The notes: generated by a model from the sequence alone, not told the origin. A stretch of 64,000 nt of DNA from Marsupella aquatica (GCA_973895155.1 OZ316898.1:1056751-1120750), one strand, 5' to 3'. Positions 14,302-62,409 are shown, counted from the stretch's first letter. Numbers and translations: made by a program.

Positions 14302-17300
14302 ACCTGGATGAAATAGGCAGATTGTTTCTCTTTGGTGATACGTGTTCCTCACTGTGAGGTATGGAGCACTCACCTGTATGTTCGGGTCAACTGAAAGCAA
14401 GTGCGGGAGATTGTTATGTACACCTCTCGCTGATGGTGGCTACAGTACGTAAGGTTTCAAACGCACGAGTTCGTGTTTTGGACGAGAGTAAGTGTCTGGA
14501 GGTGGCAGTGTTTAGCGTTCATTGTTGCCTCAATTGGTGGTCCATCTTGAATATTTGGAGGATTTGAACTACACCTGCATGTAGGACGATAGACATCTAA
14601 GCCTTCTTCTAGTAGATGACACGAGCAGCAAAGACAAAATGTTTGCGACAACGAGGTACAAGACATGAGTTGCGGTTTGTGCATTGAATGTGAACTAATT
14701 ATACTTGAATGATTCATGCTAAGTAACCTATGCCTCCTTTTCCACCAATCCAAGTTAAACACAACGAAATGCACAAAAGTAAGGAGGGTTAATATCTATG
14801 ATATGTTTTAATGAATACGGAGCAGGATAGTTAAGTATCTTTCGTTTTTGGATCGAGTGCTGTAGTAGCTTGAGCATGGAACAAGTTCACTTCACAATTG
14901 TATCACCTGGGTCAAAAAAGCAAGCTCGAAAGAGCCTCACTTCACAATTGTATCACCCCGGTTAAACAGCAGTATCAGGACTAAAGAAACTGAGAGCCCG
15001 AAGAGTTTTACCTGGATTTGCTGTCAATATGGCAAGAACTGTGAATGTGAGACGACTCTTAACTCAATCTCCCGGGGACCATTAAGTTCCTAGAGGATAC
15101 TGTGAGTAAGCGAAACAGGGATAGAACGAAGGTATGCACTGTGAGCCAGAGTGAGACTATGATTGAGTATCCTCTATTCAGAGTAGGGGACATCTTTAAC
15201 ACAATAGTACAAGAGAGTGAAATGAGTCGCGGAGAACGAACAGTCAAGGGAGCGGCCCAACAGACATAAGTGGTGCGTGACTCGTACTGACATAGACGTT
15301 CTCTCCTACGACTAAATTCGAAACTCAAAATGAACGTGATTTGAGCTGGGTTTAAATTCTGCGCAAGTATTTCAATCTAATCAGGACACGTTTGAAGTAG
15401 TAACTGAAAACCTCCAAGTTCAGGAAGAACAGAAAGACACAACACATTTGAACTACTAGCTGAAAACCTCCAAGCTCAGGAAGAACATAAAGACATAACG
15501 GAAAGGAGCCCGTTTAAAAATACAGATCCGTTAGTCCGAAAGTTCACAAATACACATCCGTTAGTCCGAAAGTTAACCGACTGGAAAGGTATTCCAAGCA
15601 TTTTATTGCACCAAGCACTATAACCACTAGGATAATGGCAACCGCCGGCGTCAAGCGCCGTTCAAATGATACGGTTTGCTGCGTGGATGCTCAGTCGGTA
15701 ATGCCCACTTACAGAAATGTAAAGTCGAGGGCTTCGATTCCTCTCCTCCGTTGAAGTGAGAATCGATTCGGCTACACGCCCAGCTTCCTTTGCGGATTTG
15801 TAACTTTTGCACTTTGTCAAGGTTTCGGGCAAACCGTCGTTCCAAATGCGAGCTCTCCAGTTCTTTCCGCCGTATCTATTTCATTAGATGAATCGATCAA
15901 TTTCACTGAAGTCAAACAGTCTGGAAGGTGAGTCGTAATTGCGTACTCTGGTATCGTATAAAGCGTAGCGTGAATTATACAATTGAACAAGAGTGGTACT
16001 CGAGTCCGTTTCATCATTGACGCTTAATTTGGGTTTGCAGGTTGTATAGACTGCGGTTAGAGCCTTCCGGGGGGGGGGGGGGGGGGGGCGGGGGGGTGTG
16101 TTGGGTCTTCATGTGCATTAATGCGAGGTGCACCATGGAAGACTAGCACATTGCCCTGCTAGGAGAACTCGTCCAAGATCAACAGTTCGGACTGTTCCAA
16201 AAAAGCTTCGACATATTTGATCCGGGTGTTTTGGTGAGTTTCTCAGCGCGTTTCTTTTGGAAAATGTCCGTGAGTTTTCACTCAGTTGAAACTAGGTTTA
16301 TGGGTAGACTCTAATAGTACTCGTTTTTAAGTTCGGAGAGTTCAATGATACCGGATTTCGGGTTCCGAGAGTTCTTAAATTGTTGTGAGGAACGGATTCT
16401 CTTATCATTCTAGCTAGTATCCAAAGGAATACATACTTTGAGGGGGCCTTGATTTTGAAGCTTGAAGGAGTATTCTGACTGAATGAAAACTGCACTTGCA
16501 AGACTAGCACGATTGGCTATTTACATGGCCATAAGATCTTCGTTTTTGCACTGATTTGAGGAATCCAATCGCTCCACGAGATTCATAAAATCCGTCGTTG
16601 ATCAGCACTTGCTACAAATGTCATACATTCAACTTGTTCAAGCTCTCTTAGTTTCGAGGCAGTGAATGATAATACTTTTGCCATATAAAGCGTTCGTTTT
16701 TGTTTTTGAAATATCATAAAAGTTCAAAGGACGTTGCCAGAGCACTGTCATAAGATGTTAGATACTTACACGGTGGGATCTGATCTCTCAGGCTTCTGCA
16801 TCTCTTCAATCATGAAGATAGTCGGGGAAACTGTTGAGCCGGCATTACCTATGGAGACTGGCACTCCATCCAGTAGTCCAAGTAAGAACAAAGCTCGAAA
16901 GCGGCGCACGAAGAAGAACCAAAAAATTATCCGGAAATGCACCTGGATAAGCTGGAAATGGATGTATATAATAACAATTGTAATGACGCATCTTTTGATT
17001 TTGGTCGTGCAATGTAAGCTTTTGAAGGCTTATAAACTTTGCTCTTAAGGGCAGCATTTCTGTTATATCTGTTCCTTCATGGAGCATTCCGGGTTGATGG
17101 GTTGTGTACATCATGGAGAGCAGCTCCTGTTTCTGCTTTGTGTTTCTCTACGAAAGTCCATAATGGATTATAAGTGGTCGAATTCATTATCAGGCTTTGT
17201 AGCAATTCAACACAAGTGCCTACGCTGTTGAAGCTTCCATGTAAGCTGGTCAGCCAGATTCTCAGCGAATGCCACATTGCATCCCATGTAACTAGATGTC

Positions 17301-20739: not shown

Positions 20740-21278
20740 ACCTCATCCCATAAATTCATGACTTTCAAAAGCTGGTCAACTAAATGATTATTTTATTATT
20801 AGGAGCTTCAAAAAGTCATGGCTTACCAGACTTTGGGCTTTTCTCAGGCCACATGTCCAATGAACCATCCAGCGAGAACCTGCAATCCCAGTTCGGAGAG
20901 GGAACAACTGGGCAACACTTCACTGACGGCCTTAATGAAAAGGGTTGCGGCACTGGTTCGCTTTCCATACAATTAATTATTAATTAAAAAATCGGACCTT
21001 CAAACTTGGCTTACCCGACTTGAGCTTCTTCAGGCCACATGTCCAGTCAATGTTCCAGCGAGAACTGGCAATCCGAGAAGTCCAAGCAGTGTAAATAGTA
21101 ACGGGTTGTTGACGCCATCATTATTTTGTAACTCCTATCATTCCTCTATCATTCCACATATGTAATAAACTTCCAGTCACAATTAGCGACCTGAGAAGTC
21201 CACGGACCAGACACTACGGCAAGTCAATTGGCGTCAACATCCTATTCTACGTTTGGATAAAATAGCCGACCACTTTGC
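20740..21278 (+). repeat. diverged copy of 59595-60070 (sequence downstream of the syntaxin gene)
   Basis: Shared blocks GGTCAACTAAAT, GAGCTTCAAAAAGTCAT, CTTCACTGACGGCC, TCCAGCGAGAACTGGCAATCCGAGAAGTCCAAG, AGCGACCTGAGAAGTCCACGGACCAGA. Confidence 0.9.
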
Positions 21279-21284
21279 TCTCCT

Positions 21285-22420
21285 GGGTTCCACTGCCAAA
21301 TAGGTCGGATGTAAGGAAGCGAGGAGAAACGGTTGTGACAATGATGCCTTGTGGATTACTTTTGCAGGGTAGCAAACACCCCCGTGAGCCGCGGTTACCG
21401 GACCCAACAATTATCTGACGTAACAACCTCATGCCCGCCTCATCCCTTCACCAAAATTGTTTCCATGATCTTTCCACCGATACTCTCACGGCACTCCACT
21501 CGGAGAGAACATTTGTAATTCGTTTTAGCGAGCCGTGTTGACCTCTGCCCACCAATACTCTCGCGGCTTTAGATTCGGGGAGGGCCTGCGTTTTTAAGCG
21601 GAAGATACTATTACTCTTACTGGTCTTGCCTTCGAGATAAGAGCAGCTCGAAGTGGATGCTGGCGGCCCTTACTTTTCCTGCCCTCAAGTTCACCGAGGA
21701 CGATAGTGTATTGGCTAAGAATTTTGTGCAGTAACCTCCTCGCTAGGCAGGGCTTACGGCGTGCATAGTGGAGAACAAGGGCAAGAGTAGGAAACTTCAT
21801 GCCCTTGAGGTCCCAAATTTTGAAATCACAATAAACCAGGGACACGAAATGACAACAAACCACAAAAAGCAGCGAGGGACACGAACAGTGTGTGTGCCAG
21901 TAGCACAGTTTGACGCAATTCGGAGAATGGCTTCGGACGTTATATGGTTAGATCCATTTTGAAGAGCTTTTGGAGTGAATGTGCCGATTCCGACAATGGG
22001 GACAGAGTCCAGAAGCCAATTTAAAACAGTGAACACTTTGAGTGGAGCTATTAAATCTTATAAACTCCGAGACTAGCTGGTGGAGAATGTTGTTGCAAGA
22101 CAAGGTTATATATATAGTCTCCGTATCTTTGAGTCTAATAATGTTCAAGCAGGGCAGAGCAGACTCCTATTCAGTACATCTTACTTTCAGTGAAATTTCT
22201 CAGGCTTACGAGTATCCCAGCTGGTCCACAATCTTACTCAACAAGCAATCCAGAAATCCATGATACGTAACCAATACCAGAGTTGTAATAAAGCGCTACC
22301 CAGGAAAAGGGGCACTTCCCAGGAGACAACCAGTACGTACCCGGCCATGCCAAAGCAAGATTGCTACAAGGGTCCAGTGAAAATTGAGATCTCCAGAGTC
22401 AATGGGACACACTTTTTATT
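21285..22420 (+). pseudogene. decayed member Q1 of the orphan Q family
   Basis: 21285-21650 aligns with 24545-24890 and 35715-35940 (ATAGGTCGG, GGATTACT.TTGCA, CTGA.GT.ACAAC..CATGCCC, AAGCGGAAG). Only weak downstream similarity (LDPF, ELL) to the 37046 ORF. Confidence 0.5.
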
Positions 22421-22424
22421 GAAT

Positions 22425-23000
22425 GTAAAAGAAATCGCAAATAAAATCTGAACTTGTACACCACGTAAATTGGCCACCTCGCTACTTACAGAGATGCTAG
22501 TCTCGCTATTTACACCTCGCTAGTTGACTCGTGGCAAGGGACTGAGAGCAATCTGATCGAGGCGATGTCACAACAGGTCACCTGGCTGGATCTGGCCTCT
22601 CTCAAATGGACAAGCGTGGCCAATATAGGTTCCACGGATTTAGAAATGGAGTAAAGCCACAAGAATCCCTCCTTTCTCTTCCTAAGGCTTCAAACCTCGA
22701 AATACACTGGACAGCCGGGGCAGTTGACTGTGTTGCAACGAAGTGTAATCAAATCCGGCATCCTCCAAGGTGAGGACGCCCAACCCAGAATTCTCCTTAA
22801 AGGAAAATAAATGCTACCGTTTCTATCGCCCTTTCAAGACAATTGCTAAAGACTTTAATACAGGAGTGTCAAGCCCAGGATCAAAGCTACTGTCAAAATT
22901 CTGGCACGCACTTGCGTATCCTCATGTGTCTTCCAAAAAATTCTTCTTCCTTTTGGATCAGTGTTTCGCTCTAGGTCCCTGCTCGTTCCTCTCACCATCC
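22425..23000 (-). pseudogene. P3: syntaxin-derived TM anchor plus 3' UTR remnant (paralog of the 3' half of P2)
   Basis: Encodes DGERNEQG...RARILTVALILGLTLL with frameshifts. DNA aligns with 25140-25680 and with the syntaxin 3' end 61045-61585. Confidence 0.8.
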
Positions 23001-23002
23001 GC

Positions 23003-24177
23003 TCAAATACAAAGAATACCCAAGATGGAAGGGACAAAAAAACGACTCGTTGGGACATCTTCGACTAGTGCTATCATCCCCCAGAAAATTGTGCTGCTCT
23101 CACTTCGGAATCCAGAACTCAAAAGAAGCCCTCGGACTGTACGAGGGGCTTCGCCAAGAGTAAATCTCGTGCAGCGAAATAATGCTACTAGCTCATAATT
23201 CAGTGCTACGACGGCGTCTATTTCCATGGACTCGAGAGCAAATTCTGGTCCAATCTGAAACATGCATGAAGACGAACCTTGGAAATCCGCTCCGTATCAA
23301 AGACAAAAAGATCAGACTGATTCACCGAATGCAGTTTGCCGTCTGCCGTGAACAATGTTTCAGCAAATTCGTCAGCAAGATTCCATACAAACTGGGCAGG
23401 CACTTGTGTCCATTTGTTGTGTATAGCACTGTAAACCTCCAACCAAATCGCAGGGTGCGTATAATCCCATTCTGCACCGTTTTCTGAATCATTATTCAGA
23501 CCTTCTTGCAGCTTCCAAAGCAATTTCTCCCTCCTCGTCAGAAAATCAAAATCATAAAAGCTTCCTCGGTAGACCAGAAGCTCGGCTCCTATTTTCTGTA
23601 TTTTATGACCCAGACGCAAGGATGGCATAGGAGGAAGAGGAGACCAAACATTTAGGATGGGATCATACACCTCTGTTCCATATACAGGTCCGCAAAGAGA
23701 AGTTCCGCCACAGACAAAAATTTTCCCATCGACAACACTGCACCCGAAGTGTTGCCTTGCTTCCCTCATACTTGTGCACAACTCCCAGCACTCCTGTGCT
23801 CCAGCGTCTCGCGCTCCGGCTACGTCCAGCACATACACTTCATCACTACTAAGTTTTAGATCAGGAGTAGACGTCTGCTCAGACTTCAATCCTCCCAGGA
23901 CATACACCTTCCCGAACAAAGTTACGCATTCGCAATTCCACGGGATTCCGCTCTCAACATGTGGGATCGGAGGGAGTTGGTGAAAAGTATTTTCTTTGAA
24001 AGAATAGGCACAGATCGCTTGCGTATCTTCTGGACAAGCACAATTCATGACAACAAGTATGTCCGGGTCCTGGACATGTCTTAGTTCAAGCAGATCGGCA
24101 TCCCTTCCTGCGTCTTCCTCGGGAATGTCATCATGAACATTACGCCATATGCTTGGCAGAAAGTTCCTGTCGCCCAT
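23003..24177 (-). pseudogene. Kelch-repeat protein (F-box/Kelch family type, no F-box evident) with a 1-nt frameshift near 23260
   Basis: Kelch motifs CVTLFGKVYVLGG, WELCTSMREARQHFGCSVVDGKIFVCGG, EVYDPILNVWSPLPPMPSLR. Adding one T to the TTT run (plus AAA 23258-23260) joins ORF 23218-24177 to 23003-23263, giving ~391 aa. As assembled it is a 319-aa truncated ORF. Confidence 0.8.
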
Positions 24178-24544: not shown

Positions 24545-25166
24545 CTCCCACTGGCGATCGTATAGGTCGGGGGGTAAGGAAGCGAGTGGGAATACTTTGT
24601 GACACTGGTGCCTTGAGGATTACTCTTGCAACGTCGCAAACACTCCAATAATGGACCCAACAAGGATGGACCAATTACCTGACGTCACAACAACATGCCC
24701 TCCTCATCCCTTGTGCACTCTGGTTCTCGCCCATATTGTTTCCATGAATAGTGCTCTCACTGCGTTAAATTTGGAGACTATATATGGTTATTGTTTGTCA
24801 AGACTTGTCGACCGCTCTCCACCAATACTACCACGGCCTTACATTCGACGAGTGCCTGCGTGTTGAAGCGGAAGATAATAGTATTCTTTAGCAACTCACG
24901 GCTCCACTTGATTCGTTGTAGTCCGAACTCATCGCAGACGTGCCTCTAGGACACCGTCAATGATCGACAGTCAAGGGAGAACGCTCAACAACGGGTACGT
25001 GATGGATACGGATCCGAATTCCGATTGGAGAGAGGCAGTGCGCCTGCGATGGCCAGAAATGCAGCTTGTCAAACAACGACAGAATGGCGAAGAACGCGTG
25101 ATAAGATCCAATCCGAATCCAGATTTGAGGAGACTTGTTGTAAACGAAACTGCAAATAAAATTTGA
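24545..25166 (+). pseudogene. truncated Q-family member Q2
   Basis: MDTDPNSDWREAVRLRWPEMQLVKQRQNGEERVIRSNPNPDL matches MDSDSHFGRKEALRRRFREMQLVEPSQTDDQEMVDPNPNPDL of Q3. It then runs into the antisense strand of the syntaxin-derived 3' UTR and stops. Confidence 0.75.
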
Positions 25167-25495
25167 ACTTGTAGAACACGTAAATTGGCCACTTCGCTAC
25201 GTACAGAGATGCTAGTTGACCCGTGGCAAAGGACTACAGCAATCTAATCGCGGCGATGTCACAACAGCTCACCTGGCCGGATCGTCTCTCAACTGGCTGA
25301 GCGTGGCCACTATAGCTTCCACGGATATGGAAATGGAGTAGCCACAATCCCTCCTTTCTCTTCCTAAGCCTCGAATTATACTAGCTGTACAGCCGAGGAA
25401 TTGCTTACGCAGTGTAATCAATTTCGGCAACTCCAATGTGAAAAACGCCAGCCCAGAATTTCCCATACAGAAAAATAAATGCCACACTTTCTATT

Positions 25496-25954
25496 TTAGA
25501 CATTTGCTACAGACTTTACAATCAGGAGAATCAAGCCCAGGATCAAAGCCAGTGTCAAAATTCTGGCAATCCACTTCCGTATCTTTCTGTGTCTTCGGGC
25601 AATTTCTTCTTCCTCTGGATCAGTGGTAGGTGCAGTGTTCTCGCTGGGTCGACGTCCCTGCTCATTTCTCTCACCATCGCCTTGATTGGCAGGCAGGTCC
25701 AGTATCTTCGTGGCTTGATGATGCAGTGTCCTCACCCGTTCAGACGTGGAGGGCACAGGGTCGCACTGCTCGCGCTGATTTTCATTGTTTGTACTTGAAC
25801 TACCGGATGGATTCTGCACGGTTTTTCTGTCATGTGTGTCGACCGCAGCAGCCATCAATTCCTGAATTTCATTGGGAGGAACATCTCGACTCTCCACAGC
25901 GGCTATTATTGCGAAGAGTTCGTCAATCTCATCTATGTATGTCCGATCAGCCAT
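25496..25954 (-). CDS. P2: 152-aa tail-anchored orphan with a syntaxin-derived C-terminal anchor
   Basis: Intact ORF with AAGATGG start context. C-terminus IARRHRKIRKWIARILTLALILGLILLIVKSVANV* aligns with syntaxin IAKKHQRNSRKWTCIAIILILILILIVLLPILHSLKVF*. Its 3' flank is homologous to the syntaxin 3' UTR. Confidence 0.65.
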   Translation of the reverse strand: MADRTYIDEIDELFAIIAAVESRDVPPNEIQELMAAAVDTHDRKTVQNPSGSSSTNNENQREQCDPVPSTSERVRTLHHQATKILDLPANQGDGERNEQGRRPSENTAPTTDPEEEEIARRHRKIRKWIARILTLALILGLILLIVKSVANV

Positions 25955-27299
25955 CTTCGGTACAAGTTGAACGAAAGGGGCATCAATTCAGGAATTTCAT
26001 CGGGAGTAACATCTCGACTCTCAACGGTGGCCATAACTGCGAAGAGTTGGTCAATCTCATTTTTTGTATGTCCGATCAGCCATCTTCGATATTGGAACGA
26101 AAGGAAAATGGCTCGGTGGGCAAACTCGTTGACGGAGACTGGCTGACGACTTCAACCTCCGCTTTAGATGTCTAGCTCTAGTTACGAGAAGAATTAAATT
26201 AAGGGTCGATATAAGTATATATGCTGTCCAACAGAAGTCTTGCAGGTTGGCAAGGATTGCAAACATCGACCCTGCGCCAAGGCCAGTCTGTTTCTAATTT
26301 TCTCGGCTGTCCTAAGTGTAAAAAACATTCATCCAGCTGGCTGGCGATCGAAAGTTTGATTAAGGTGAACATTAACACTTCCAGTCTCCTCCACTCGAAG
26401 TGACTCACTCACAATTCAGCTACACAAATGGCAGTTGAATTTAGGTTTCCTACCAGGATAAGTTCATTTGAGCAGCTCGTTCACTGCAACGTCAAATATT
26501 AACGAAGGAAGGAAGACGAGTGAAGGAAGAGTGGGAAGGTCTACAGTCTCGATGATTACCGAAGTTTTCTCGCAGGTGAACCAGACGACCGGAGAACGAC
26601 ACATGTCTTGCGGAAAACAAAAGGCCGGGCGACGGGTGAGAACAGTAAGTGGAATCGAACTCGCTTTGGAATTACGAGAACAAGATCTGGAAGTTCAGAA
26701 GCCTGAAGATCCAGAAGCCTAAGATCCGCTGCCTAGCTGACTACTGTACTCAGAAAGGGTAGTCGTTGGAACTAACTGTATATACTAATAACTGGTATCA
26801 ATCCAAGACATTAGAGTAATTCACAAGAATAGCAAGGATTTAACTTCCACTTCCTGCTGCAATTGATCAAAGACGCTGCACAAGGTACACTGATCACTGG
26901 GCGGTTCTCAATTAGAATTGAGATAGAAGTTCCATTTTGAAAGTAAAACAGAATATGCACTTTCGATTTTAATGTCAATCGATGTGAATCGACAGATGCA
27001 GTTCATTGTGCAGACATGAGTACTCAGCGAGAGAATGAATATTGAATGCTCTGCTGAACTCTTTACTGATCGAGAGAGTATATTGAACATTCTGTGCCCT
27101 ACTTAAGAAGAGAGCAAAAGGGGCGCAGACCGAGATTCAAAACCGGCCACCTCAGTTTGATTTCCAACGGCCAAATGGCGCTAGTGATTGGACACAAGTA
27201 GAACTGGTAGGGTAAACCTAGGCTGATAAACAGTCAGAAAGAGAAAATCTACTGTAGAGATTAGCAACTCGTACTGCCAGATTGCCAGTGTTCTGGATC

Positions 27300-31845: not shown

Positions 31846-34800
31846 ACCGAATTGTGCCGGATCAAGCAGGACAATCGAGGCAAGGAGGATTAGACCTAGA
31901 TTTTTCCGGATCAAGCAGGCCATTCGAGGCAAGAAGGATTAGACCAAGATTTTTCATACCAAGTCAGATGGAGAGTGCAGTCGCAAAACTAGGGCCCGAT
32001 TGATAATAGACAACTGTATAATTATACGTCCGCGTACCTACCTTATACCACTAATTGGACCCGGAAGCAAGGCCAAAACACATAAATGTAAAAAAAAAAG
32101 CCAATAACGGGGGGCTATATCACAGTGCCAACTAATAAAAATGTCCACCTTGGGCTTCGAAGGGAGAAAGTAAAATGGAATGACCTCAAAGGGGACGAAG
32201 AGGCCGCCCCTCCAGCCAAGAGGGGTGGGTGTCCATCCAAGGGACTCCTAAGGGGTATTCCTAGCTGCCAAAATCTTAAAGTAGTAGGCAGGCAAGACTA
32301 TTAGGTTTAGGGTCATCCTATTGTGGTTGAGTCCTCCTTTAGGGCAGGGTTCATGGGCCAGGGGCAGGTGGGAGCACTCCCCTTACACCCCCAGGCCCAA
32401 ATATGCCTTTTGCCAAGGTGTATAGATTATTTTCAATGTATGGGTTTTGACTTTAGAGCCAGTTGAGAATACCCTATTCCTACATGGGGGCAGGGGGTAC
32501 CCTGGAGTTGAAAAGGGAGTGTGACTGAGTGAGGGAAATCACTGCAATGTCTGTACATCCCCTTAGCCCCTGGAAAACCTGTAATCTTTTTGGCTTCAAC
32601 ATTCTGACACACATCTGGACTCCTCACTCCCAGCTGAATGGAACCTTGCCCTTAATGTTATCCTTTAATGTTATCACACTAACTACCTCAATACATCAAT
32701 GTGCGTTTGTATATATAGAACATGTTGCCAAAAGATGTCTATATGCAAAATATGTTCATGCATTTTTTAATGATGCAGTGGACCAAAACAAGATGTTGCA
32801 TGAAAGACTGAGGTAGTTGTCAGTGCTTGTAAGAATGTAGTTGCGTAAAAGAGGTCATTCTACAGAAAACATTGTTGCATTAAATAAGGGTTTCAATGCG
32901 TGAAAGATGTTCTTAGGCAAAAGTTGTTATAGAGTAAATAATAAATTTATGCTGGAGAGAGTACAGTGTACGCAATGGAAAAATCCCTAGTCAACATTGA
33001 GAAGCAAAAAGAATACACACAATATTCACCGCACCCCCGCTCTCTAGAGTTATTGTAAGTTGCAAAAATGGTATTGTTGCAACAGAAATCCTTGCAGTCA
33101 AGCATTCAATGCAAAGTCAACAAATAAGTAGAGATAAATGGGTCTGCTAAGGCAAGACTTAAAAATATTCTTGGAAGAAGATTAGGGTCTTTTAAGCCAG
33201 TTTTGAGTCTTGTAAGAACATTAGTATCCTTTCAACAATATTCCAATAACATTACAACAATGCAGGGGTAAAAATAAAATAAAAAATTCTCTTACATTTT
33301 GGGGGAGCCAAGGCTTCAAATGTCACAACCTGTGATGGTAATACCTTAAACAGTTTTACATAATGATATATACCCTTGAGGTTCATTGTGTTCCTACAAG
33401 AGTAATTGAAGTCCTAGTACCAGTTCCACCAATAAAGCTTTGTAGAGAACAACAAGGCATCAGCAGCAAGAGAATTTTTACGGAAATTTTTCAATCTTAC
33501 GCAGAAAAAGTGGAACACCAACTTTTTTCAAATTTTGTTCTTTAACATACTTAGCCAACCTTCTAGGTTTAATTACTATTTGAAGACATGTACCCAGGCG
33601 GCCTAATATACAAGAGTTGAATACCAGGGCTTTGGAGAGGTCAAGATGGTGCCTTTGCTGCCAGGAGTATCCTCCTCCTGCAAACACTGCTGTGAAAGAC
33701 AAAGTAACTTTACTTAGAGTTTCATCAGGGTCCATCCAGAAATCATTCAATTTCAATATGGCCTAACATGTTAAGAACCGTTCAGAAATAGAAAAATTGA
33801 AGAATATTTCTGGTGAGATGGCTTCCAGCCACCCCTAACAATACCCATTTTGGTGGTTGAAAACAAGTATTTTGAACAAGCTACTGAGTGAGATCCAGCC
33901 ACCCCTACCAATACCCGTTTTGGTGGTTGAAAACAAGTATCTTGAACAAGCTACTGAGTGAGGGACTGATGTTTTTATTAAGAAGGTCCTTGCACGCAGG
34001 GTGAAGTAACTTCTGCTTCATTAAAAAGAATTTAAACTTCTGCTTTCAAAGTTTTTTTCCACAGTGGAATTTCATGAGCAGGACCCTTTTATTGAAGTTG
34101 AAAGTAACTCCACTTCTTTTTGCCACTTAGAAGGTTTGTTCAAAATTCTGGTTTCCATTAATCACATGCATGCCAAAACAATTAAGATGAGCTTTTCTCA
34201 CTGGAGTAAACACTATCCCACTTTTTGGCCTGTACCCAACAGAAATGTGTCAATTTCCCTCATTTCTTGTTGTTTTAGGTCTTCATAACTTTCCTTTTCC
34301 TTAGCCAAATTCTCTCAATCAGATGTTGTCAGGTTGAGCAATTAGGGAAGCTTTGCATTCCACCCTTGCAAGCTTTTTCCCATCAAGCAATGAAAAGTTT
34401 GAATTGAGAAAATTTGCATAGTCAGTTTGCTGGTAACAAAGGACAACTCCTCAATAGTTTGACTCTAAGATGAACCTTGTTTGGTGGATTCACCTTATAA
34501 TTTGTTTTCTATTACCCAATCATGCTACCACCCCTCCTAAACCAACTTATTTCAAATGACAGAACTGGAAGTTGAAAAGGACAAATATGTATTGATACTT
34601 GGTGGATGATGAATCATGTGATGATCGATGTGGCACATTTGAATGGTTATTTTGCTACTTTCAAGTACTTCCTAAAATGAACAAAACCCCAAGTTACATG
34701 AGCAATCCATGGATACTGTTCAATGACATTCAATGAGATGATTTTAATCCTCCACATATGATCAAACTACCTACTGATAGTTTAAATGCCACCTCAGGAG

Positions 34801-35979
34801 AGAACATCCTCAAGTTGGCGATTTGTTTCCCGGTTTGTTTGTGCCTACCTGCCTAAGATCTTTTCTGTAATGCCCACCCATTAGATTTGTGCCTAACTTG
34901 TCCAAAACGTTGCCCTGAAGGTCCAACCACAATCCAAACTAGACAAATTAACTTCTAAACCAAAAACAATTCCAAGTAGCAAAACTCTGAGTCAAAAATA
35001 GATAAAGTATCATTCATAAGTTACTAAAAAGTAAAGTGCTTGTGAAAGTTTCCATTCGATCACCACTAATCTTTTTTCCAGTCAGTGCGAGTCCAGAACT
35101 TTGATTGGCTCAGCCTTGAACAAAAGTATTGCATGCAGTAATCATATACTCTCAAAACATTAATTTCAATTATTTATATTGAAATATGTGATCATTCTTT
35201 ACTAAGTGACAACCCAAGAAAAAAAAACACCAAGAGGAGAGAGTATTCCAAAGGCAAAAGACCCATTAAGAGGGAAAAGGCAAAATACCCATTAAGGGGG
35301 CCTGGAGGAAGGCGGAGAGACCCCAATAAGACCCATCAAGAGGCCTCACCTTTCTTCTTTTAATAGTGAACGGAATACTTTAATTATAAGTCAAGTAAAA
35401 CCTAAGTAAAACCCAATAAAACAAGGAAAGAACAGGCCAGACCCCAAACCAGGTCACAGACCTCAAGCCTCCTCAAGGACCAAACACATCCACTTTTAAT
35501 GGTGAAAGGAATACTTTAATTATAAGTCAGTAAAACCCAATAAAACAGGGAATAAACAAGCCAGACCCCAAACCTGGTCACAGACCAAAAGCCTCGCAAG
35601 GACCAAACACATTCAGTCAAGTAGGCCCCACCTTTCCAAGAGTAGTAGAGTAGCCCTAAACTCCCAAATGGATAAACCCTGAAGTGGCAATAGGCTCCAC
35701 AACGAAGAAACCCTGAACTGGCAATAGGTCGGAACTCGGAAGTACAGGAGCGAGGCCGAATGTTTGGACAGCGGTGCCTTTTCTGGATTTACTCTTGCAA
35801 CGTGGCAACCACCCTTGTGAGCCGCCAATTCCGGTCCGGACATACAACAATTCGCGATTAGCTGATGTCACAACCTCATGCCCAGCCTCAGCGCCCAGCT
35901 TCTCCACCAACACTCTCACAGCTTTGGATTCGGGGAGGGGTTTTGTTCGTTCTATTATTTAAGGCCTTAGTTTTGACCT

Positions 35980-36900
35980 CTCTCTCCATCACTTCGCTCG
36001 CTGCATTGGTTTCAGGATTGTGCCTGTGAGTTGAAGCGGATGATCGTAGTCCTTGATTCGGAGAGTGTTTGTAATTGTATCTCAAACCCTTCTCTGGCTG
36101 TGTGACACTTCTCTGGCTGCATTGGGTTCCGAGTGTGACACTTCTCTGGCTGCATTGGGTTCCGAGTGTGCCTGTAAGTAGACGATGGAAGTGCTCGATT
36201 CGGAGTTGTTTTATAATTCTATCAAAAGCCTTCGTGCTGTCCTCTTTCCAGCACTTCGCTCGCTGCATTGTGTTCGAATTGTGCCTGTGAGTTGAAGCGG
36301 ATGATCGTAGTTCACGACCGAAGTGCTCGATTCGGAGTTGTTTTATAATTCTATCTAAAGCCTTTGTGTTGTCCTCTTTCCAGCACTTCGCTCGCTGCAT
36401 TGTCTTCGAATTGTGCCTGTGAGTTGAAGCGGATGATCGTAGTCCTCGATTCGGAGTGTGTTTGTAATTCTATCTCAAACACTTCTCTGGCTGCATTGGG
36501 TTCCGAGTGTGCTTGTAAGTTGACAATGGAAGTACGTGCTCCATTCGGAGATGTTTTGTATTCTATCTAAAGCCTTCTTGTTGACCTCTTTCCAGCACTT
36601 CGCTCGCTGCATTGTGTTCGAATTGTGCCTGTGAGTTGAAGCGGATGATCGTAGTCCTCGATTCGGATATTATTTTCTGTAATTCTATCTAGGGCCTTAG
36701 TGTTGACCTCTCTCAAGCACTGCTCTCGATGCATTGGGTTCCTAGTGTGCCTGTGATCGAGTCGACGATAAAACTTCTAGATTCGGAGACTGTTTTTGTA
36801 AATCTATGTAAGGCCTTGGTATTGACTTGTCTCCAGCACTTCTCTAGCAGCATTGGGTTCGGAGTATGTCTGTGAGTAGAAGCGGAAGCTCGTAGTCTCT
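35980..36900. repeat. higher-order minisatellite (~90-130-bp A/B monomers, ~8 units) upstream of Q3
   Basis: Recurring GCACTTCGCTCGCTGCATTGTGTTCGAATTGTGCCTGTGAGTTGAAGCGGATGATCGTAGTCCTCGATTCGGA (A) and CACTTCTCTGGCTGCATTGGGTTCCGAGTGTGCCTGTAAGT (B). Confidence 0.93.
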
Positions 36901-37045
36901 TTCTCGTGTTGCATCTGAGAGAAGAGCAGCTCAAAGCTCTACTTGATTCGTTGTATCCGAACTTATCGCAGACTTGTATCTAGAACACCGCCGTGTAGTG
37001 TGTGCGAACTATCGACCGGCAAGGCGGTACGGTCAACAACGGGTG

Positions 37046-37843
37046 ATGGATTCGGATTCACATTTCGGTAGGAAGGAGGCATTGCGCCGGCGATTCCGAG
37101 AAATGCAGCTTGTTGAACCAAGCCAGACCGATGACCAAGAGATGGTCGATCCCAATCCCAATCCAGATTTAGGGGACGCAGTGACACCAGAAGTGCAAGA
37201 AACGCAGCTTCGCGAGCTATTGTTCGGAAGTCTCGCGAGTCGTCTTCATGGGCCTTCACTTTCAAGTCAGGCGGACTTGAATGTTCCAATTGAATCATTG
37301 TTCCCGCGATTGTCCGAACTGGAAGGGATGGATCCGTTCGGAGAGGCACTGCTAGAGGCGTTACGTCCTGCACCGGTCCTCGACTTTGAAAATCTTCCTT
37401 GTGAGGCTACAATGGAAGGAGAAGCGGAGCTATTGTCCTCACTCCCCCCCTTACCCAGCATAGAGGCATCCACCATAGATGAGTATTTGGAGGAACTTGT
37501 TGTGAAGAGGGAAACTACAGACCCGGTGTTGAATAAGATGTACATGCTACTGAAGGGCCTTACTTCAGCCGGTTTGCCAACTGCTTCGTTGTCACGAGAC
37601 TTCAAACGCGTCCAAGAAATGGTTACAGCCAACATGCTTAGGCAGAGTTGCAGATCTTTGGTTGAAAAGGAGCCGGAAAGTGAACGAAGGGTGGTGGATG
37701 CGAATTACATGGATGCAGTTAGTAAGAACATCAAGAAGTTTGTACGTGAAAATTCTACAGCAGGCAGGGACGGGGAGGTTCATCATAATGCAACGTCGAT
37801 TTCGCCTTCGTGTACGAATCAACCTGTCACATTTCGATTGTAG
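37046..37843 (+). CDS. orphan protein Q3 (265 aa from ATG), unknown function
   Basis: Long open frame conserved without frameshift in the paralog 51624-52637, while flanking DNA has many indels. No recognisable domain. Confidence 0.65.
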   Translation: MDSDSHFGRKEALRRRFREMQLVEPSQTDDQEMVDPNPNPDLGDAVTPEVQETQLRELLFGSLASRLHGPSLSSQADLNVPIESLFPRLSELEGMDPFGEALLEALRPAPVLDFENLPCEATMEGEAELLSSLPPLPSIEASTIDEYLEELVVKRETTDPVLNKMYMLLKGLTSAGLPTASLSRDFKRVQEMVTANMLRQSCRSLVEKEPESERRVVDANYMDAVSKNIKKFVRENSTAGRDGEVHHNATSISPSCTNQPVTFRL

Positions 37844-38013
37844 CTGCACTGCTTTTCAAAAATTGGCTCGGCCGTCAATCGTTGACAGTATAGCAGCAAT
37901 CGGCAATACCACATAATTGTCGCCAATTCGGTAGAATAGTTTTCTTGCCTCCGCCTTCCGTGAAGGTATGAAATTATGAGGTATATATTTCTATATTAGT
38001 ATTTCTATGTTAG

Positions 38014-39177
38014 GGTGAACAGCGAGCTAAGGTACTACTCTTTTATTGGCAAAGCCTCTGCAGTCCCTTTCGGAGAACGCACTTTGCGTGTGGAGAATTT
38101 GGAGCTATCCTTGGGTTTCTACTGCGGTGTCTTCGGTAAGTTACAGAATGTTTGATATACGAATTCCTAGCTAGCTCGCTGGTAATGAATTCCTAATGAG
38201 GTTACAATCGCGTAAAATATAGCGAACCGGATCGACCTATTTAAAGAAGCTCAACCCGTCTTTCATTGGTTATCTGAGTGGACTTGTAATTGATTTGTGC
38301 TGACCACGGGTTTTGGGATCGCGCATACAGGAATGAGACAGAGCCTGAATCCATCCGACCTTCCCTACCATGGGGCTTGGTTGTTTTTCGGAAGTGAGGG
38401 GATTTTTCTCCTGGAGGTTTCAAACCCTGATATAGTGACAGGTCTCACTGTGGATGGAAACTTTACTAGTCACGCTCGCATCAACTGCGGGAACGTTGAG
38501 TGTGTTAGAGTGGAACTCCAAAATGCAGGTTTGGTTAACTATCGAAGAAATAATTGCTCGCCGCCGCCGGAAAGTAGTGAAAATAAAAGAGTCGAGTCGG
38601 ATCGATAATATTGAAATCAGATAAGTTAGTGTTTCCACTGAAAAGAAGAAATTGCTCGCCGGCGGAAAAGAATGAAAATTATGAAGTCGAGAAGTCCGAT
38701 CGCTAGTATCGAACTGAGAGAAGTTTGAAATTCATGTTTGAACCGAATGTGTATTCATCGTCATATCAATGCATGAACAGACTATTTAACTCGGAATGTT
38801 AGCTCGGGCAGTACTGAGTCGTTAAAACACTACAGTACGGTACTGCTGATTGCCCAAATGTTTATTGTCTGTGTACAGGAATTCCATACCAGCAGAGCAT
38901 GCCCGAGACCAGCGCACGGCCATCGCTCACCACCCACGATCCCGACGGCAATTCCTTGGAATTCATCGAGATGGAAGCGTTGCCGTCGACCGAAGACTCT
39001 TCGAATGAAGACGAAGACGAACTCCAGTCCATGTTGGAGAGGGCATCCGCAGAACTCGACCGCCAACTGGACCTCCTCGCAATAGACTCGCTCCAAGAGC
39101 AAATTCGCGAGCTCCAACGAGATCTAGAGGGAGCTAGGAGCAACAGAAAGGAAAAAATGAAGGTTGACAGAAATTAG
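38014..39177 (+). CDS. three phase-compatible exons (38014-38135, 38331-38528, 38879-39177) ending in an acidic/coiled-coil segment; possibly the 3' part of Q3
   Basis: AG|G...TTCG|GTAAGT, ACAG|GA...GCAG|GT and ACAG|GA joins give one open frame VNSELRYYSF...YCGVFG MRQSLNP...ELQNAG IPYQQSMPETS...VDRN*. Splice sites and exon lengths are identical in the second copy. The link to the upstream ORF was not resolved. Confidence 0.6.
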
Positions 39178-39989
39178 CACTGTTCAGTGCTCAGTAGTCA
39201 AGGAACGACTCGTGTTGCAAAGATATTCGAGTATTATCAGTCTTCCTCAGTCTGCTAGCTAAGCCCACTTGTTCGGGCATTGCTTCCTGTTCCATCCGGA
39301 ACACGGATGAATTAGACTTGAGCAATCGGTCTAAGCTCGAGCGATAGAATTTCATAGGTCCAATCATGTTGTGAGATAGTTTGGTGGTCTACCTTCGACA
39401 ACATTGGTTTTCCTTTTGTAGAGAGGTTTTGCAGGCCTGATCGAGGCTTCTGAGTTTTTCATTCGGCGTAGGACACAATTTTGGCTTTTCGGGCCTGAAA
39501 TTTTCCCCCTTTCAGGTAGCTCGGTTTTTCCCTTAGCGGATTCGGAATAAAGTTATGGGGCTCGGTTATGTCATTGCTCAAGCGGCCTCATGAATCCAGA
39601 TCCATATGTATCTCAGTCTGATATTATGTCCAGATGTATCTCTAATGTTACGTGGAAGATCAAGCAGGGCGGTAGTGCAAGGATGTATTGCTCGAGTGAT
39701 CAGTAAGTGAGTGAATATTAACATCGAATGCTTGTGGTGTCAATGGAGGAATATATACTGACAGAAACACTTTTCTCATTTGCACCAATGAACACTGAGA
39801 AAAGCACCGAAATATCGTTTTCGACGCCAAAAGAAATGATACACTTAACTAAGGCCTGAATTTAGTCGAAGTTAGATATTACACTTGTAATGAGACCCTT
39901 GAACGGTTCTCAAGACAGTCCTCCCTGCCCACCCCCCTATATTAGAGACTATAATCAGCCCCATGGCCAACCATCCCCATAGTTGAGTC

Positions 39990-40560
39990 CTTACTTAGAT
40001 AATTTGGATTCCTTGACTTGGCACAAACAACCAAATGTCTCACAAACCCTTCAACTTGCCAGGAATAGATTTCCAAGTCATTTAAAGCTTTTTTAGCTAG
40101 GTAGCCCTTCCAATTTGGCGTGAACAACCAAACAGTTTCATGATATATAACACTAACTTCCAACTAGCCAGGAGTAACCAAATGCTCTAAAGCTCTTCCA
40201 AGTTGGCATGAACAAATTAGAAATACTCTCAAAACCTTCCAAGCTGACATTAATTAAGAGCCAAATGCTTCTGGGACTTTTGCAAGTTGGTATTAACAAT
40301 AAGCCAAGTGCTTAATTCTAAGCCCTAACAACGCACAGGGCCTCCAAGTTGGCATGAATTAAAATTCTTAATAAACCTTTTATAATTATATTTTAACCCT
40401 TTTAACCTCGCACCAACAACCAGATGCCTCCCAAACCCTTCCAACTTGAATAACCAAATGCTTTTGTAACCCTAGCTTCAAAAAAAACTTGGCATAAACA
40501 ACCAGTGAGATACTTTCATATATTAATATTACCCTTCCAACTTGGTATCAATAGCCAGAT
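39990..40560. repeat. degenerate ~40-45-bp tandem repeat (CTTCCAA.TTGGCATGAACAACCAAATGCT); longer copy at 54750-55570
   Basis: Repeated CCAA(G/C)TTGG...AACCAAATGC cores. Confidence 0.7.
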
Positions 40561-41634
40561 GATTGGTTAAATTAGAGCTATTAATTCTTATTTCTCTACA
40601 AACACAAAATGAATTTTGTTATAAATTCTTTACGCTTGAGTTACCAGGGGTAACTCCCTATCCCTACAATTCACTGGCGCTGGGACTCCAGGGCATTGGC
40701 CCCATATACTGTATATATCAAGGGAACTTACTATACTTGGTTTTACTCCAACAACCCAATACTCCAATTCTTCCACTCTTAATTTAGCTTTCCTGTTGGC
40801 CTGGCTGCCACCAAAATTTTCAAGCATGAAACCCAACTTCATTCAAGCATTAAGCATGACATCCAGATATTTTATTTCCAGCATATCAGTTTAACTCAAA
40901 AACCATGGGCATGCGCATTGGAAAACTGGAAGATCCAATGAAATTTTTTCTGACTTGCATTTAAAACAGTTGGGTGGTTTCACTTCTACTTACTACACAT
41001 ATGATTTCTGTTCCCTTAATATTGTTTCAAACCATGAGCCTTTGAAACCAACATGCATGCACTTTATTTGGGTATGTCCAAAAATCATATCCAAAATACT
41101 AATTAGTAAGGTAAGAATGTGGGGATTGATGTGATGCACCCAGCCCTCTAATAGGATCACTTTAGCCGATCTTTGTTCATAACATTGGGGATTACATGAT
41201 TATATAAACAAGGCTTTTCCCAAATCTATGGGCTTTTTCAAAGTTTTGGGCTAAGTAATTCAAGCATCTCAATTCATGGTTTCAGGTAAGTCTTTGAAGT
41301 ATTAGTACTACATTCCTAAAAGTTTTGGGGATGACTAAAGTATAAGTAACTCAGATTTGGGGACCAGTCACATTGATGCAAGATAGTGGGTAAATGATTA
41401 TCCAGGCAATTAAAGACAGACTAGAGCCTCCTGTATCAAACTAGGCCCAAATTAACCAATTTGACCAAGTTGATGTTTTGGAGAGTCTATCTGATACAAG
41501 ATGCTCTATGCAAGGCATGGGCATCCTATGCATACCTAGCTTGTAACTTATCAAGACTAAGCAGGATACTATAAGAGGTAGATTATGAACACGGGGTGAA
41601 CACTAAATAGAATATAGATTCTTCTTGGCGGGCC

Positions 41635-41929
41635 CTCGGGGGTCTCACTATATGGAGACCTCCCCAACACCTGCGACGTTTTTAGGCCTTGGACCCCCTA
41701 AAATGTAAGAAAAAAATTATTTTTTATCCCCTATAAAGTTAGAGTATTCTTCGAATATTCCAAAATTTTGATTAAAAAGACCCTAATGTTCTTCTAAATC
41801 TCAAAATTGGATTTAAATGATCATATTATTCTTCTACAAAAACTCTTAAGTCTTCCCTCAAAACCAATAAAACAACCTTATACTTTGTTGCACGTGATAT
41901 GCTTTTTTTGTGAAAGTGAAACCCCTGCG
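41635..41929. mobile_element. non-autonomous DNA transposon with 8-bp TSD (hAT-like MITE family A)
   Basis: Ends CTCGGGGGTCTCAC / GTGAAACCCCTGCG; TSD GGCGGGCC / AGCAGGCC; empty site AGCGGGCT at ~56917. Related copies at 48212-48479 (inverted), with partial ones at ~33170-33350, ~46630-46800 and ~56640-56682. Confidence 0.75.
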
Positions 41930-48211: not shown

Positions 48212-48479
48212 CTCAAGGGTTTCATTTCCACAAAAATGACATATCATGTGCGAAGTACAGGGTCATTTTATTGGTTCAAAGGAAAGACTTAAGAATTTTC
48301 TGAGAAGAACAATAGGGTCTTTTGAATCCAATTTGAGACTTATAAGAACATTAGGGTCCTTGTAACCAAAATTTTGGAATATTCCAAGAAAAAATAATTT
48401 GTTTTCCTACATTTTAGAGGTCCAAGGCCTAAAAAAGTTGCAGGTGATGGGGAGGCATCCATATAGTGAGACCCCCGAG
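48212..48479. mobile_element. MITE family A, inverted copy
   Basis: Reverse complement of 41635-41929; flanks ATCAATCA / GTCAGTCG (8 bp, differing only by transitions); absent from unit 1 near 34420. Confidence 0.72.
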
Positions 48480-60070: not shown

Positions 60071-61467
60071 CAAGCGCGTCTGTACCACTTCATCCTAAGC
60101 AACTTTCAGAACAATTTAATGCTCGCCAGTGATGCTGGACACTGTGGAAAGTTTGTGTGTCAGGGAGAGTAATTCAACCGAAGAAAGCAAAAAGCCTCCA
60201 CTCAATACCTGAGATTTGACTTCTATAGATACTCATCATCTAGTTCCTGGAAAGCTGCTTACTACCTGACATTTTACTCGTTTCCTCCGCACGTGCAAAT
60301 GCTCGGACCAAAAAGGAACATTAGAAAAACTACATGGCCCTCGACGAAGTTGATCTACAATGGACCCAATTCATAATTAGATAACAGACCCCTACTTGTA
60401 CCCTTGAATTACCAGCGGTTTGAAGCGGTTATTCCATGCCATGCCAAAACTTACAATTCTTTCTGCACTGCACATCCCGTAAAGAGAGGAGTTGCATACT
60501 TAAGTAGAAAACCGAAAGGATCTTCGGAATCGTCGAGAGTCAAAAGGAAGAGCGTTCAAAAAGAGACGAAAAGAAGAGCGTTCGAAAAAGAATGTCCAAC
60601 ATGGAAAGGGCATTGAATACTGAATGGAGTGCAAAAAATATCGCTGCAAGTCCCAAATAGTAACTCTTGAAGCTGTGACAGAACCCAAAAGCAAATTTTC
60701 GTGACCGTTGTAACAAACAAATATTTGCAATTACCGGACACCGTCCGTCATGAAGGATTCCATTCGATAAACCTTACTTGAAGCGGTACTTGTCATGCTG
60801 AACACTAAGCTACTTTAGTCCCAATCTATGCCCGAGGAAAAATCAAAGTACCTTGCTCGAGACCAGAGATCGAACAATGAGCGACTCGTGAAAATGGCAA
60901 TACTCAGTTATTCAGCTGCTTGTATCTCATTGAACCAGAAATTGAAACCAGTTCTCGGGGAGAAACTAAATTTTATAGTTCACGAATAACAATGAGAGAC
61001 TCGTCAAATTGTTAGTAATTTACTGCATAAGTTTGAATATAATTACAAAGAGAGAAAAGAAACTGCAAAAAAAATAGTTCCCCGTGTAATTTAGCCAGCC
61101 ACACAGCTGGCTCGTGGCAATGCCGTGACCCGAGTATGATCGAGACGATCTCACAACTGGTCACCAGAGATCAACCTGTCAAATGGGCACTTCTCGGTCC
61201 AAAGATCTGGAAAAGGAATGGTTATACTCCCCCTGCTCTGTCGGTTCTTCGACGTATTCTTGGACGACTGTCCGCTTCACTTTCAGACCTTGAGGCACAC
61301 TCACAACTGCGGCAGTTGCGCTGCTACAAAGTCAAATCAAGTCCACCACCTCCAATGGAACTCCACAGAAAAACACTAGCAACTCGCGAAGCAGCAGTAG
61401 GAACTCTCCAGACGACCACCGCCAACCCAGAATTCTACATAGAAATTTAGGGAAACAGCTATCCCTT

Positions 61468-62409
61468 CTAGAACACTTTCAAAGAGTGCAAAATAGGAAG
61501 GAGGACGATCAAGATCAAAATCAGTATCAATATAATTGCTATACAAGTCCATTTCCGGCTATTTCTTTGGTGCTTCTTCGCTATGTGAAGCTGTGTCGTG
61601 GCCCGCTCAACATACGAATGAGCCCTATTCACTTGTGACTCAATGTCATTCAGCTGTTCGCCCTGTGCCTCGACAAGGACAGCCATGTCCATAAAAATTT
61701 GGTGCAACTCAAGCAAATTCTTCTCAATCTCCTTCACTCCATCATGTCTCTCCTGGATTTCCCTGATGGTCTCGAGTACTTGACCCCTACCTTGTTCCTG
61801 AATGGCCTTCTGGAGAAAATTCTCACTCTCACCTGTCTCAATAATGTGCTCCAGAGTATCCTCATCTGGTCTCTGCCCTGTCACGGTGTAATATCTCCTC
61901 TCTATCGTTTCCCTGTATTCGCCCATGATCCTCGACCGAAGGGATCCAAAATCCTCCATATAGTCCTTCAGCTTCTTCCTCAAACTATTGGTAATGGACG
62001 TTCTCGTTCGGTCAGTAGGTGAGCCCTCCTCACATCCTCTCGTTCTGCGGCTGGTGGCATTCGCTCTGTCGAGCTGTTCCAGCTTCTGCTTAATCGATCT
62101 GGCCGTCTTACTCACTTCTGAAACGTCTTTATCCATACGGTCTCTCAAGGCTTTCATGGCCTGGGCTTTGTGAATGGTCTTGCTCTCTTCGTTGGCGTCC
62201 TGTAATTTGGCAAGGAGCTGTTTGATTCTGTCCATCTCATTCTTGATGATGTCCACCTCCTCGAAGAAGACCTTAAGGTTCTTCTCCGGATCCAGGCCCT
62301 GCATCTCCACCTCGCCCCCGTATTCTACGTCATGGAGGTTGTCTTTCTTCAAATCGACATAGTTCCGCGCCCGCCCCGCGGAATAGGTTTTCGTCAGTAG
62401 GTCGTTCAT
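61468..62409 (-). CDS. SYP12: SYP1-group Qa-SNARE syntaxin, SYP11/SYP12 (KNOLLE/SYP12A-like), 313 aa, intronless CDS
   Basis: MNDLLTK...YVDLKK N-terminus, Habc region, DRTRTS, ERRYYTVTG, SNARE motif EIQERHDGVKEIEKNLLELHQIFMDMAVLVEAQGEQLNDIESQV, and RKW plus TM anchor. The YVDLKK motif and lack of CDS introns favour SYP11/12 over the intron-rich SYP13. Confidence 0.93.
   Translation of the reverse strand: MNDLLTKTYSAGRARNYVDLKKDNLHDVEYGGEVEMQGLDPEKNLKVFFEEVDIIKNEMDRIKQLLAKLQDANEESKTIHKAQAMKALRDRMDKDVSEVSKTARSIKQKLEQLDRANATSRRTRGCEEGSPTDRTRTSITNSLRKKLKDYMEDFGSLRSRIMGEYRETIERRYYTVTGQRPDEDTLEHIIETGESENFLQKAIQEQGRGQVLETIREIQERHDGVKEIEKNLLELHQIFMDMAVLVEAQGEQLNDIESQVNRAHSYVERATTQLHIAKKHQRNSRKWTCIAIILILILILIVLLPILHSLKVF

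Follow-up and report, generated by a model that had tools for sequence, protein, structure and literature searches.

How does a small gene that lacks the domains of a syntaxin come to end like a syntaxin? This question is raised by P25, an open reading frame (ORF) in a 64,000-nucleotide stretch of the genome of the liverwort Marsupella aquatica (GCA_973895155.1 OZ316898.1:1056751-1120750; this whole stretch is referred to below as the window, and all positions are counted in it). The window also carries a syntaxin gene, which is located approximately 36 kb from P25 on the same (-) strand. The original prediction described P25 as an orphan built on the membrane anchor and the 3' untranslated region (UTR) of this syntaxin. 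We consider P25 to belong to a young, lineage-restricted and fast-evolving family of small C-terminally anchored membrane proteins and to be a chimeric gene that arose by partial duplication of the syntaxin, a reading to which we assign a probability of roughly 0.65. A stretch of DNA would have been duplicated in cis that comprised at least ~740 bp of the syntaxin 3' flank and the last ~45-50 codons, which encode the extreme end of the SNARE region, the polybasic collar and the membrane helix and include the stop. This segment would have been fused to ~100 codons of unrelated sequence, which presumably provided the start codon, a two-helix N-terminal module and a Ser/Glu/Pro-rich disordered linker, with a conserved non-coding block located further upstream.

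The ORF was found to be present and uninterrupted at the predicted length (Table 1). No spliced model of P25 was needed since the gene calls of the whole family are single-exon. The sequence strings which had been quoted as shared between P25 and the syntaxin were located at ~25146/61059, 25249/61140 and 25447/61421. In local alignments of the 3' flanks with the coding sequences (CDS) excluded, the comparison of P25 with the syntaxin reached a z score of 13 against dinucleotide shuffles, and that of a decayed paralog in the window, termed P22, reached a z score of 19; the observed scores were not matched by any of 300 dinucleotide-preserving shuffles. An independent nhmmer query consisting of the 3' end of the syntaxin ortholog of Calypogeia fissa (locus L001) matched positions 25653-25074 (E 2.5e-14), 22768-22164 (E 7.6e-19) and, on the (+) strand, 16908-17249 (E 1.6e-9), whereas the same profiles gave a best E value of 42 in a reversed-window control. 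A second nhmmer profile, made from the whole syntaxin gene and its flanks in two species, aligned 25655-25440 with its columns 1427-1629 (E 2e-7), and a profile of the P-family CDS in turn matched nucleotides 802-929 of the syntaxin CDS (E 4e-9).

The final seven codons and the stop of P25 pair one to one with those of the syntaxin. The two stop codons are thus homologous, in agreement with the claim that both genes stop in the same place. The membrane segment of P25 shows two net in-frame codon losses relative to the syntaxin, and in total about the last 50-53 codons of P25 are syntaxin-derived. Beyond the stop the match extends for ~430 nt in the profile up to 25139-25142, where an unrelated repeat interrupts it, while in P22 and in L003, a contig which carries a relative of P25, the syntaxin homology reaches ~736 nt past the stop. 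An alignment of the P25 and P22 regions to the syntaxin 3' end had been named as the test of the proposed origin; both alignments are significant, and the origin stands, including the descent of the 3' flank. On the basis of these nucleotide comparisons we regard the homology of P25 to the syntaxin as real, with the anchor, the stop and the downstream DNA evidently descending from the syntaxin 3' end.

In the 5' direction the match to P25 starts at column 1427, i.e. ~145 nt ahead of the stop codon and close to residue 266 of the 313-aa syntaxin. Five copies, representing three taxa, all have their 5' limit at columns 1427-1464, and the nhmmer searches with full-gene profiles detected nothing upstream of these columns in any copy or species. 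Because the freely evolving 3' flank is still readily detected, the 5' limit is a true breakpoint and not the product of erosion, and the SNARE heptads lie outside the homology. An extension of the homology into the SNARE motif was tested in four ways and found to be unsupported; a weak, out-of-register nhmmer hit of 3.6 bits was judged to be noise. For the remainder of the P25 ORF no relation to the syntaxin was detected, nor was any relative other than the members of its own family found among 1.84 billion representatives or by a profile word search.

The parent gene consists of a single intronless ORF with Pfam matches to Syntaxin (E 3.6e-54) and SNARE (E 4e-18). Its closest database match is the C. 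fissa protein P0001 (97% identity). The best matches from Marchantia and Riccia show 75-77% identity (77% for the best Marchantia protein), and the best named matches, which are from angiosperms, are of the syntaxin-121/124/KNOLLE types. Judging from these matches alone, the window would be placed in a leafy liverwort close to Calypogeia, and the parent belongs to the SYP11/12 group; the narrower label “SYP12”, as used in the original prediction, is plausible. Background on the SYP12 paralogs of Marchantia, MpSYP12A and MpSYP12B, is given in PMC7708844. In comparison with its C. fissa ortholog the syntaxin has a ratio of non-synonymous to synonymous substitution rates (dN/dS, omega) of 0.03 at a synonymous distance (dS) of 0.48. 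Its 3' flank has been kept over ~900 nt in C. fissa (L001 10943-11869), and since the Jukes-Cantor (JC) distance of this flank (0.28) is below the synonymous distance of the gene, a long constrained 3' UTR or downstream element is suggested. The first ~740 nt of the flank are, according to the alignments, the source of the 3' flanks in the P family.

The description of P25 as an orphan did not hold. While a single-sequence word search with P25 returned nothing, an exhaustive HMMER search (1.84 billion representatives) identified two full-length relatives, P0121 (158 aa, 60% identity to P25, E 3.4e-39) and P0122 (166 aa, 43% identity, E 4.3e-12); the blank word search thus reflects its sensitivity limit and not an absence of homologs. 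A cluster look-up added P0125 (180 aa) and P0126 (167 aa), and a profile search added the shorter P0127 (146 aa). P0122, P0126 and P0127 are from C. fissa, with P0122 and P0126 annotated as “unnamed protein product”, and P0121 and P0125 are from two Logan samples. The family has so far been seen in these samples, in C. fissa and in the genome of the window.

The gene for P0121 is carried by L003, a Logan contig of 2.7 kb. This contig is collinear with the window between 26851 and the end of P25, past which it continues like P22. P0125 (Logan run SRR18067441) does not differ from P0121 until the membrane segment ends; there, a frame shift leads ~35 residues into the sequence that forms the 3' flank of the other members; this may be either a real allele or an assembly error. 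In C. fissa, P0122 is located on the same chromosome as the syntaxin at a distance of ~42 kb, and P0126 on another scaffold with an Exostosin neighbour downstream as at P0122. P0127 (L001 17725-18165), which is oriented like the C. fissa syntaxin, is found 6.8 kb downstream of it. P0127 has linker motifs and anchor in common with the family, is devoid of the N-terminal helices and has a very hydrophobic anchor of 25 residues. It may be the member closest to the original duplicate. Matches to the syntaxin profile were obtained in L003 (3' flank, E 4e-38), at P0122 (flank, C. fissa locus L002, E 1.7e-6) and at P0127 (tail and flank, E 1.4e-22). The P genes of C. fissa also retain a ~58-nt piece of the syntaxin flank that was lost in the lineage of the window. 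A tree computed from the tail and flank segment common to both groups separates all P copies from both syntaxin orthologs with 99% support, which indicates that the duplication predates the divergence from C. fissa. The homologs in C. fissa and the Logan samples likewise indicate that the gene is older than the species M. aquatica.

The AlphaFold2 (AF2) model of P25, which was built with a five-sequence alignment, is of low confidence (mean predicted local distance difference test score, pLDDT, of 56). It contains two N-terminal helices (residues 2-21 and 26-46; pLDDT ~65-72), a disordered linker rich in Ser, Glu and Pro (46-111; pLDDT <50), in line with the polar, disordered-looking linker noted in the original prediction, and a single long helix which comprises the polybasic collar and the membrane segment (112-150; pLDDT 70-87). 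In Pfam nothing above threshold was found for P25 and its five homologs, a search of the ESM atlas with P25 gave no score >0.77, and exact look-ups of the P25 ORF, the syntaxin and a Kelch-repeat protein encoded in the window returned no record. The Habc domain is indeed gone, as claimed, with no match to PF00804 in P25 or any homolog tested and no DNA homology upstream of column 1427. A match to the SNARE motif (PF05739) was not obtained either, an hhalign comparison covers the collar and the anchor only, and the segment in question is predicted to be disordered. Without Habc domain and SNARE heptads P25 cannot drive membrane fusion.

The most hydrophobic 19-residue window of P25 is the C-terminal one, and the rest of the protein is, by eye, acidic or polar and free of any other long hydrophobic run. 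In all DNA-backed members the best 19-residue window has a mean Kyte-Doolittle hydropathy of 2.1-3.8 and ends 0-13 residues from the C-terminus, the exception in the family being P0125 with its ~35-residue tail after the apparent frameshift. The basic collar before the anchor is present in every member and is homologous to that of the syntaxin at the DNA level. P25 therefore shows the features of a tail-anchored protein, i.e. a single C-terminal hydrophobic helix, a short tail and, by eye, neither an N-terminal signal peptide nor a further membrane segment. The hydrophobic stretch, delimited by eye from the conserved Trp to the next basic residue, comprises 18 residues in the full-length subfamily versus 20 in the syntaxin, and the mean Kyte-Doolittle value of the anchor is 2.4-2.7 in this subfamily versus 3.7 in the syntaxin. 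Since the anchor is shorter and less hydrophobic, the same targeting as in the syntaxin cannot be assumed, and the proposal that P25 inherited the targeting signal of its parent was not borne out.

In all family members the sense frame alone is open. In a neutral simulation with substitutions only on the maximum likelihood (ML) tree, an open frame in each of the four members backed by DNA sequence (P25, P0121 on L003 and those of two C. fissa loci) had a probability of 1.5e-5; over the distance between the window and C. fissa only, the neutral chance of an open frame was 0.006. Judging from the flanks, 11 indel events would be expected between the CDS of P25 and L003; 4 are present (P = 0.014) and leave the net frame unchanged, while only 3 of the 44 flank indels are multiples of three. 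P22 has decayed at a similar divergence: no frame of its coding remnant is free of stops, and five indels within 210 nt disrupt the frame. It shows how unconstrained decay proceeds at this locus. The ancestral ATG, which is used by L003 and C. fissa, was lost in the lineage of the window, where a new ATG is located three codons downstream. Furthermore, a few short linker motifs are invariant across the family. As far as can be judged from sequence comparison, the P family has kept its frame, its hydrophobic anchor and its collar while substitutions are near-neutral.

Several results weigh against a functional chimeric gene. The dN/dS estimate, which had been proposed along with the search for orthologs, gave an ML omega of 0.94 that is not distinguishable from 1 (2dlnL 0.15); an omega of ≤0.5 was rejected (13.9). 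The Nei-Gojobori (NG86) ratios of P25 are 1.04 versus L003 and 0.83 versus C. fissa, with values of 0.8-1.0 in all three regions of P25, none of which stands out. With 77.5% identity to L003, the CDS does not exceed its flanks in conservation. The 3' flank of P25 (78% identity to L003) evolves no slower than its 5' flank (82%), it is interrupted by the unrelated repeat from 25139 onwards, and beyond ~200 nt it is mostly unalignable with C. fissa. The 3' flanks of the P genes thus show no sign of retained constraint, and the suggested inheritance of 3' regulation found no support. A tandem duplication also puts a short decoy start upstream of P25. At the protein level the similarity of the P25 tail to the syntaxin is not significant by BLASTP (E 17), and the hhalign comparison of the family with a SYP1 alignment is marginal (25 columns of collar and anchor, E 7e-4, probability 26%). 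As this similarity is too short to stand alone, the case rests on the DNA, on which the original prediction had likewise based its argument against hydrophobic convergence. Finally, the homologs were obtained from ORF-based protein sets in which broken copies of other taxa are invisible, so that the figure of 1.5e-5 is optimistic, and effectively only three independent lineages are represented. The omega near 1, the CDS identity to L003 and the origin of the homologs from ORF-based sets would agree with a non-functional relic, i.e. a partial duplicate of the syntaxin 3' end, the upstream ORF of which is open by chance or ascertainment and which evolves neutrally towards the state of P22. That no Pfam, PDB-type or atlas relative was found and that two of the three copies in the window are decayed or partial also agrees with a relic. 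However, a relic seems fairly unlikely considering that the frames of all four DNA-backed members are open against the neutral expectations given above, that indels are in deficit with the frame kept, that the lost start codon was replaced, and that hydropathy, basic collar, linker motifs and upstream block are conserved.

P25 could also be regarded as a decoy or inhibitory SNARE, with its linker representing a degenerate Qa-SNARE motif that enters or blocks the complexes of the parent. A tblastn search performed without composition correction aligned residues 61-149 with the SNARE region and anchor of the syntaxin (92 residues, 28% identity, E 0.013). This alignment is near-gapless, with three gap positions all beside the anchor. 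It places a Gln-Gly pair of P25 on the zero-layer Gln-Gly of the syntaxin, and the spacing from Gln-Gly to Trp is 37-39 residues in P25 and P0122 compared to 38 in the syntaxin. However, the in-register DNA identity upstream of the tail is 31% versus 26 +/- 3.5% in other registers and is equalled by 4% of random placements. Taking furthermore into account that the nhmmer matches of all copies stopped short of the region upstream of column 1427 despite detection of the neutral 3' flank, that the hhalign similarity was confined to the 25 columns of collar and anchor, that Pfam showed no SNARE match, and that the segment is Pro-rich and predicted to be disordered by AF2, a decoy SNARE appears highly improbable. 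A further alternative concerns the mechanism of birth only: the segment may have been moved by 5'-truncated retroposition of the syntaxin mRNA or by transposon capture of the Pack-MULE or Helitron type. Like truncated retrocopies, all copies retain the 3' end without the 5' end. The homology also stops inside the interspecifically conserved part of the syntaxin 3' region, a possible 3' UTR, and repeats and segmental duplications are frequent in the window. As the parent is intronless, intron loss is useless as a test. On the other hand, in two species all copies are located in cis on the chromosome of the parent at a distance of 7-45 kb, P0127 has the orientation of the parent at 6.8 kb downstream, and the locus is not dispersed but syntenic and low in copy number; no poly(A) tract was present where the homology fades, terminal repeats and target-site duplications not having been searched for. 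This route is improbable, and a local partial DNA duplication would be the simplest mechanism for the birth of P25.

If the chimeric P25 gene is expressed, its protein would presumably be inserted post-translationally by the C-terminal helix via a route of the guided entry of tail-anchored proteins (GET) or endoplasmic reticulum membrane protein complex (EMC) type. In this case, the cytosolic part would consist of the N-terminal helices and the acidic Ser-rich linker, with the basic collar placed against anionic lipid. P25 would more likely act as a membrane-tethered adaptor or regulator, the exact sequence of which may be weakly constrained or under diversifying pressure. As a more far-reaching idea, the P proteins might be an invention of the Calypogeia lineage that acts on the pathway of the parent. 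Their inherited collar and helix would direct them, along with the SYP12-type syntaxin, to the plasma membrane, the cell plate or the oil-body membrane, where the fast-evolving cytosolic part would modulate the pathway or be targeted itself, e.g. in secretion-based defence, and the omega of ~1 would reflect a mixture of constraint and diversifying selection instead of neutrality. We regard this idea in its entirety as quite improbable.

In comparison with the Qa-SNARE syntaxins of the SYP11/12 group (PMC7708844), P25 has a collar, a C-terminal membrane helix, a stop position and a 3' flank that are homologous by descent, as well as the same topology with a cytosolic N-terminus and a C-terminal anchor, which in P25 is predicted. 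In contrast to these syntaxins P25 has no Habc domain and no detectable SNARE heptads, is 152 instead of 313 aa long, has a shorter and less hydrophobic anchor, and evolves ~30 times faster at non-synonymous sites (omega 0.9 versus 0.03). Chimeric genes that originated by partial duplication have been described with EXOV of Arabidopsis thaliana (PMC8824575), in Drosophila (PMC1463047, PMC5460883) and with the fusion genes of Oryza (PMC9199173). As in these cases, part of a parent appears to have been copied in P25 and the rest of the frame and the promoter recruited from unrelated sequence, evolution is fast and lineage-restricted, and the copies are located near the parent. Unlike these examples, P25 is known from sequence alone and inherited the 3' end with anchor, stop and downstream DNA, i.e. 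a module for topology and membrane attachment and not a catalytic or binding domain. P25 also resembles the tail-anchored proteins which are clients of GET and EMC (for the plant GET pathway see PMC7817167) in its single hydrophobic helix ≤13 residues from the C-terminus and the lack of any other hydrophobic segment; these proteins form a class by topology and not by descent. Our literature search did not retrieve any paper describing a syntaxin-derived anchor-only protein. Given the lack of Habc and SNARE features, P25 is not a syntaxin; it fits both the tail-anchored class and the chimeric genes formed by partial duplication.

The coordinates of P25 and of the related features in the window are compiled in Table 1. 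The conserved block upstream of P25 shows 83% identity to L003 and 70% to both C. fissa loci, compared to 58% between the CDS of P25 and C. fissa, and its indels are not multiples of three. It was rejected as a structured RNA since RNAalifold gave a weak energy and a positive covariation term, and hence no RNA-structure signal; an Rfam search over 15-64 kb of the window had zero matches. The block is probably promoter or leader DNA. The tandem duplication at the start of the P25 ORF measures 125 bp (25853-25978 and 25981-26104, 84% identity). Its upstream copy reads eight codons before a stop and, if transcribed, could form a short upstream ORF; L003 contains the segment only once. An antisense ORF of 181 codons (25630-26175, +) was rejected as a real gene because the antisense frames are not open in the homologs.

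Table 1. Features of the P25 locus and of the parent syntaxin in the window.
Feature	Position	Strand	Remarks
P25 ORF	25496..25954	-	Intact, single exon, 152 codons, without interruption
Syntaxin-derived part of the P25 CDS	25496..25655	-	End of linker, polybasic collar, membrane segment and stop; ~last 53 codons
Syntaxin-derived 3' flank of P25	25139..25495	-	nhmmer 25375-25142, E 1.5e-13; shuffle z 13
Unrelated repeat truncating the P25 3' flank	24890-25134		Copies at 36925-37177 and 51506-51755
Decayed tandem duplicate of the first ~40 P25 codons	25981..26104	-	84% identity
Conserved non-coding block	26409..26872	-	455-920 nt upstream of the P25 ATG
P22, decayed paralog	22165..23062	-	Coding remnant 22851-23062
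Third partial copy (syntaxin tail and first ~170 nt of 3' flank)	16909..17228	+	nhmmer E 2.8e-15
Parent syntaxin	61468..62409	-	Single intronless ORF, 313 aa, SYP11/12-type Qa-SNARE
Syntaxin 3' flank	60562..61467	-	77% identity to C. fissa over 765 columns, JC 0.28

P22 begins ~160 bp downstream of an intact ORF of 319 aa which encodes a Kelch-repeat protein (23218-24177, -), and the 3' region of the Kelch gene may now consist of the syntaxin-derived segment of P22. The third partial copy is located inside and after an ORF of 104 codons (16734-17048, +), the hydrophobic segment of which is weakened and carries Thr, His and Gln. This copy resembles P0127 of C. fissa, including the basic stretch, and is possibly its decaying counterpart. 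A block of ~490 bp, which is located downstream of both P22 and the syntaxin (20757-21295 and 59601-60090), has an identity of 72.5%. The possibility, raised by this block, that the duplication had originally extended to ~1.9 kb beyond the stop was rejected: the block is probably a separate repeat, given that its identity exceeds the ~60% found between the neighbouring P and syntaxin sequences and that it is absent from L003 and from the syntaxin locus of C. fissa. The window also contains a segmental duplication of ~10 kb (32444-42157 and 45908-57144, 80-93% identity) with arrays of ~120-bp tandem repeats at 35.9-36.9 kb and 50.4-51.5 kb.

P25 would represent a clean and datable birth of a gene in a bryophyte, in which a membrane-attachment module was joined, together with its stop and downstream DNA, to sequence without any detectable relative. 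Its frame has been held open over a synonymous distance of ~0.5-0.7 to the C. fissa homologs with near-neutral turnover of residues, and the non-coding block nearby is better conserved than the protein itself. Together with these two points, the presence of the parent and of intact, decayed and partial daughters within 45 kb makes the locus useful for studying the early evolution of membrane proteins. The record is also corrected in that the gene is not limited to one genome, its relatives in C. fissa having been listed only as “unnamed protein product”. If a P protein were found to co-localise with SYP12-type syntaxins, the family would be a lineage-specific addition to the secretory and oil-body system of liverworts.

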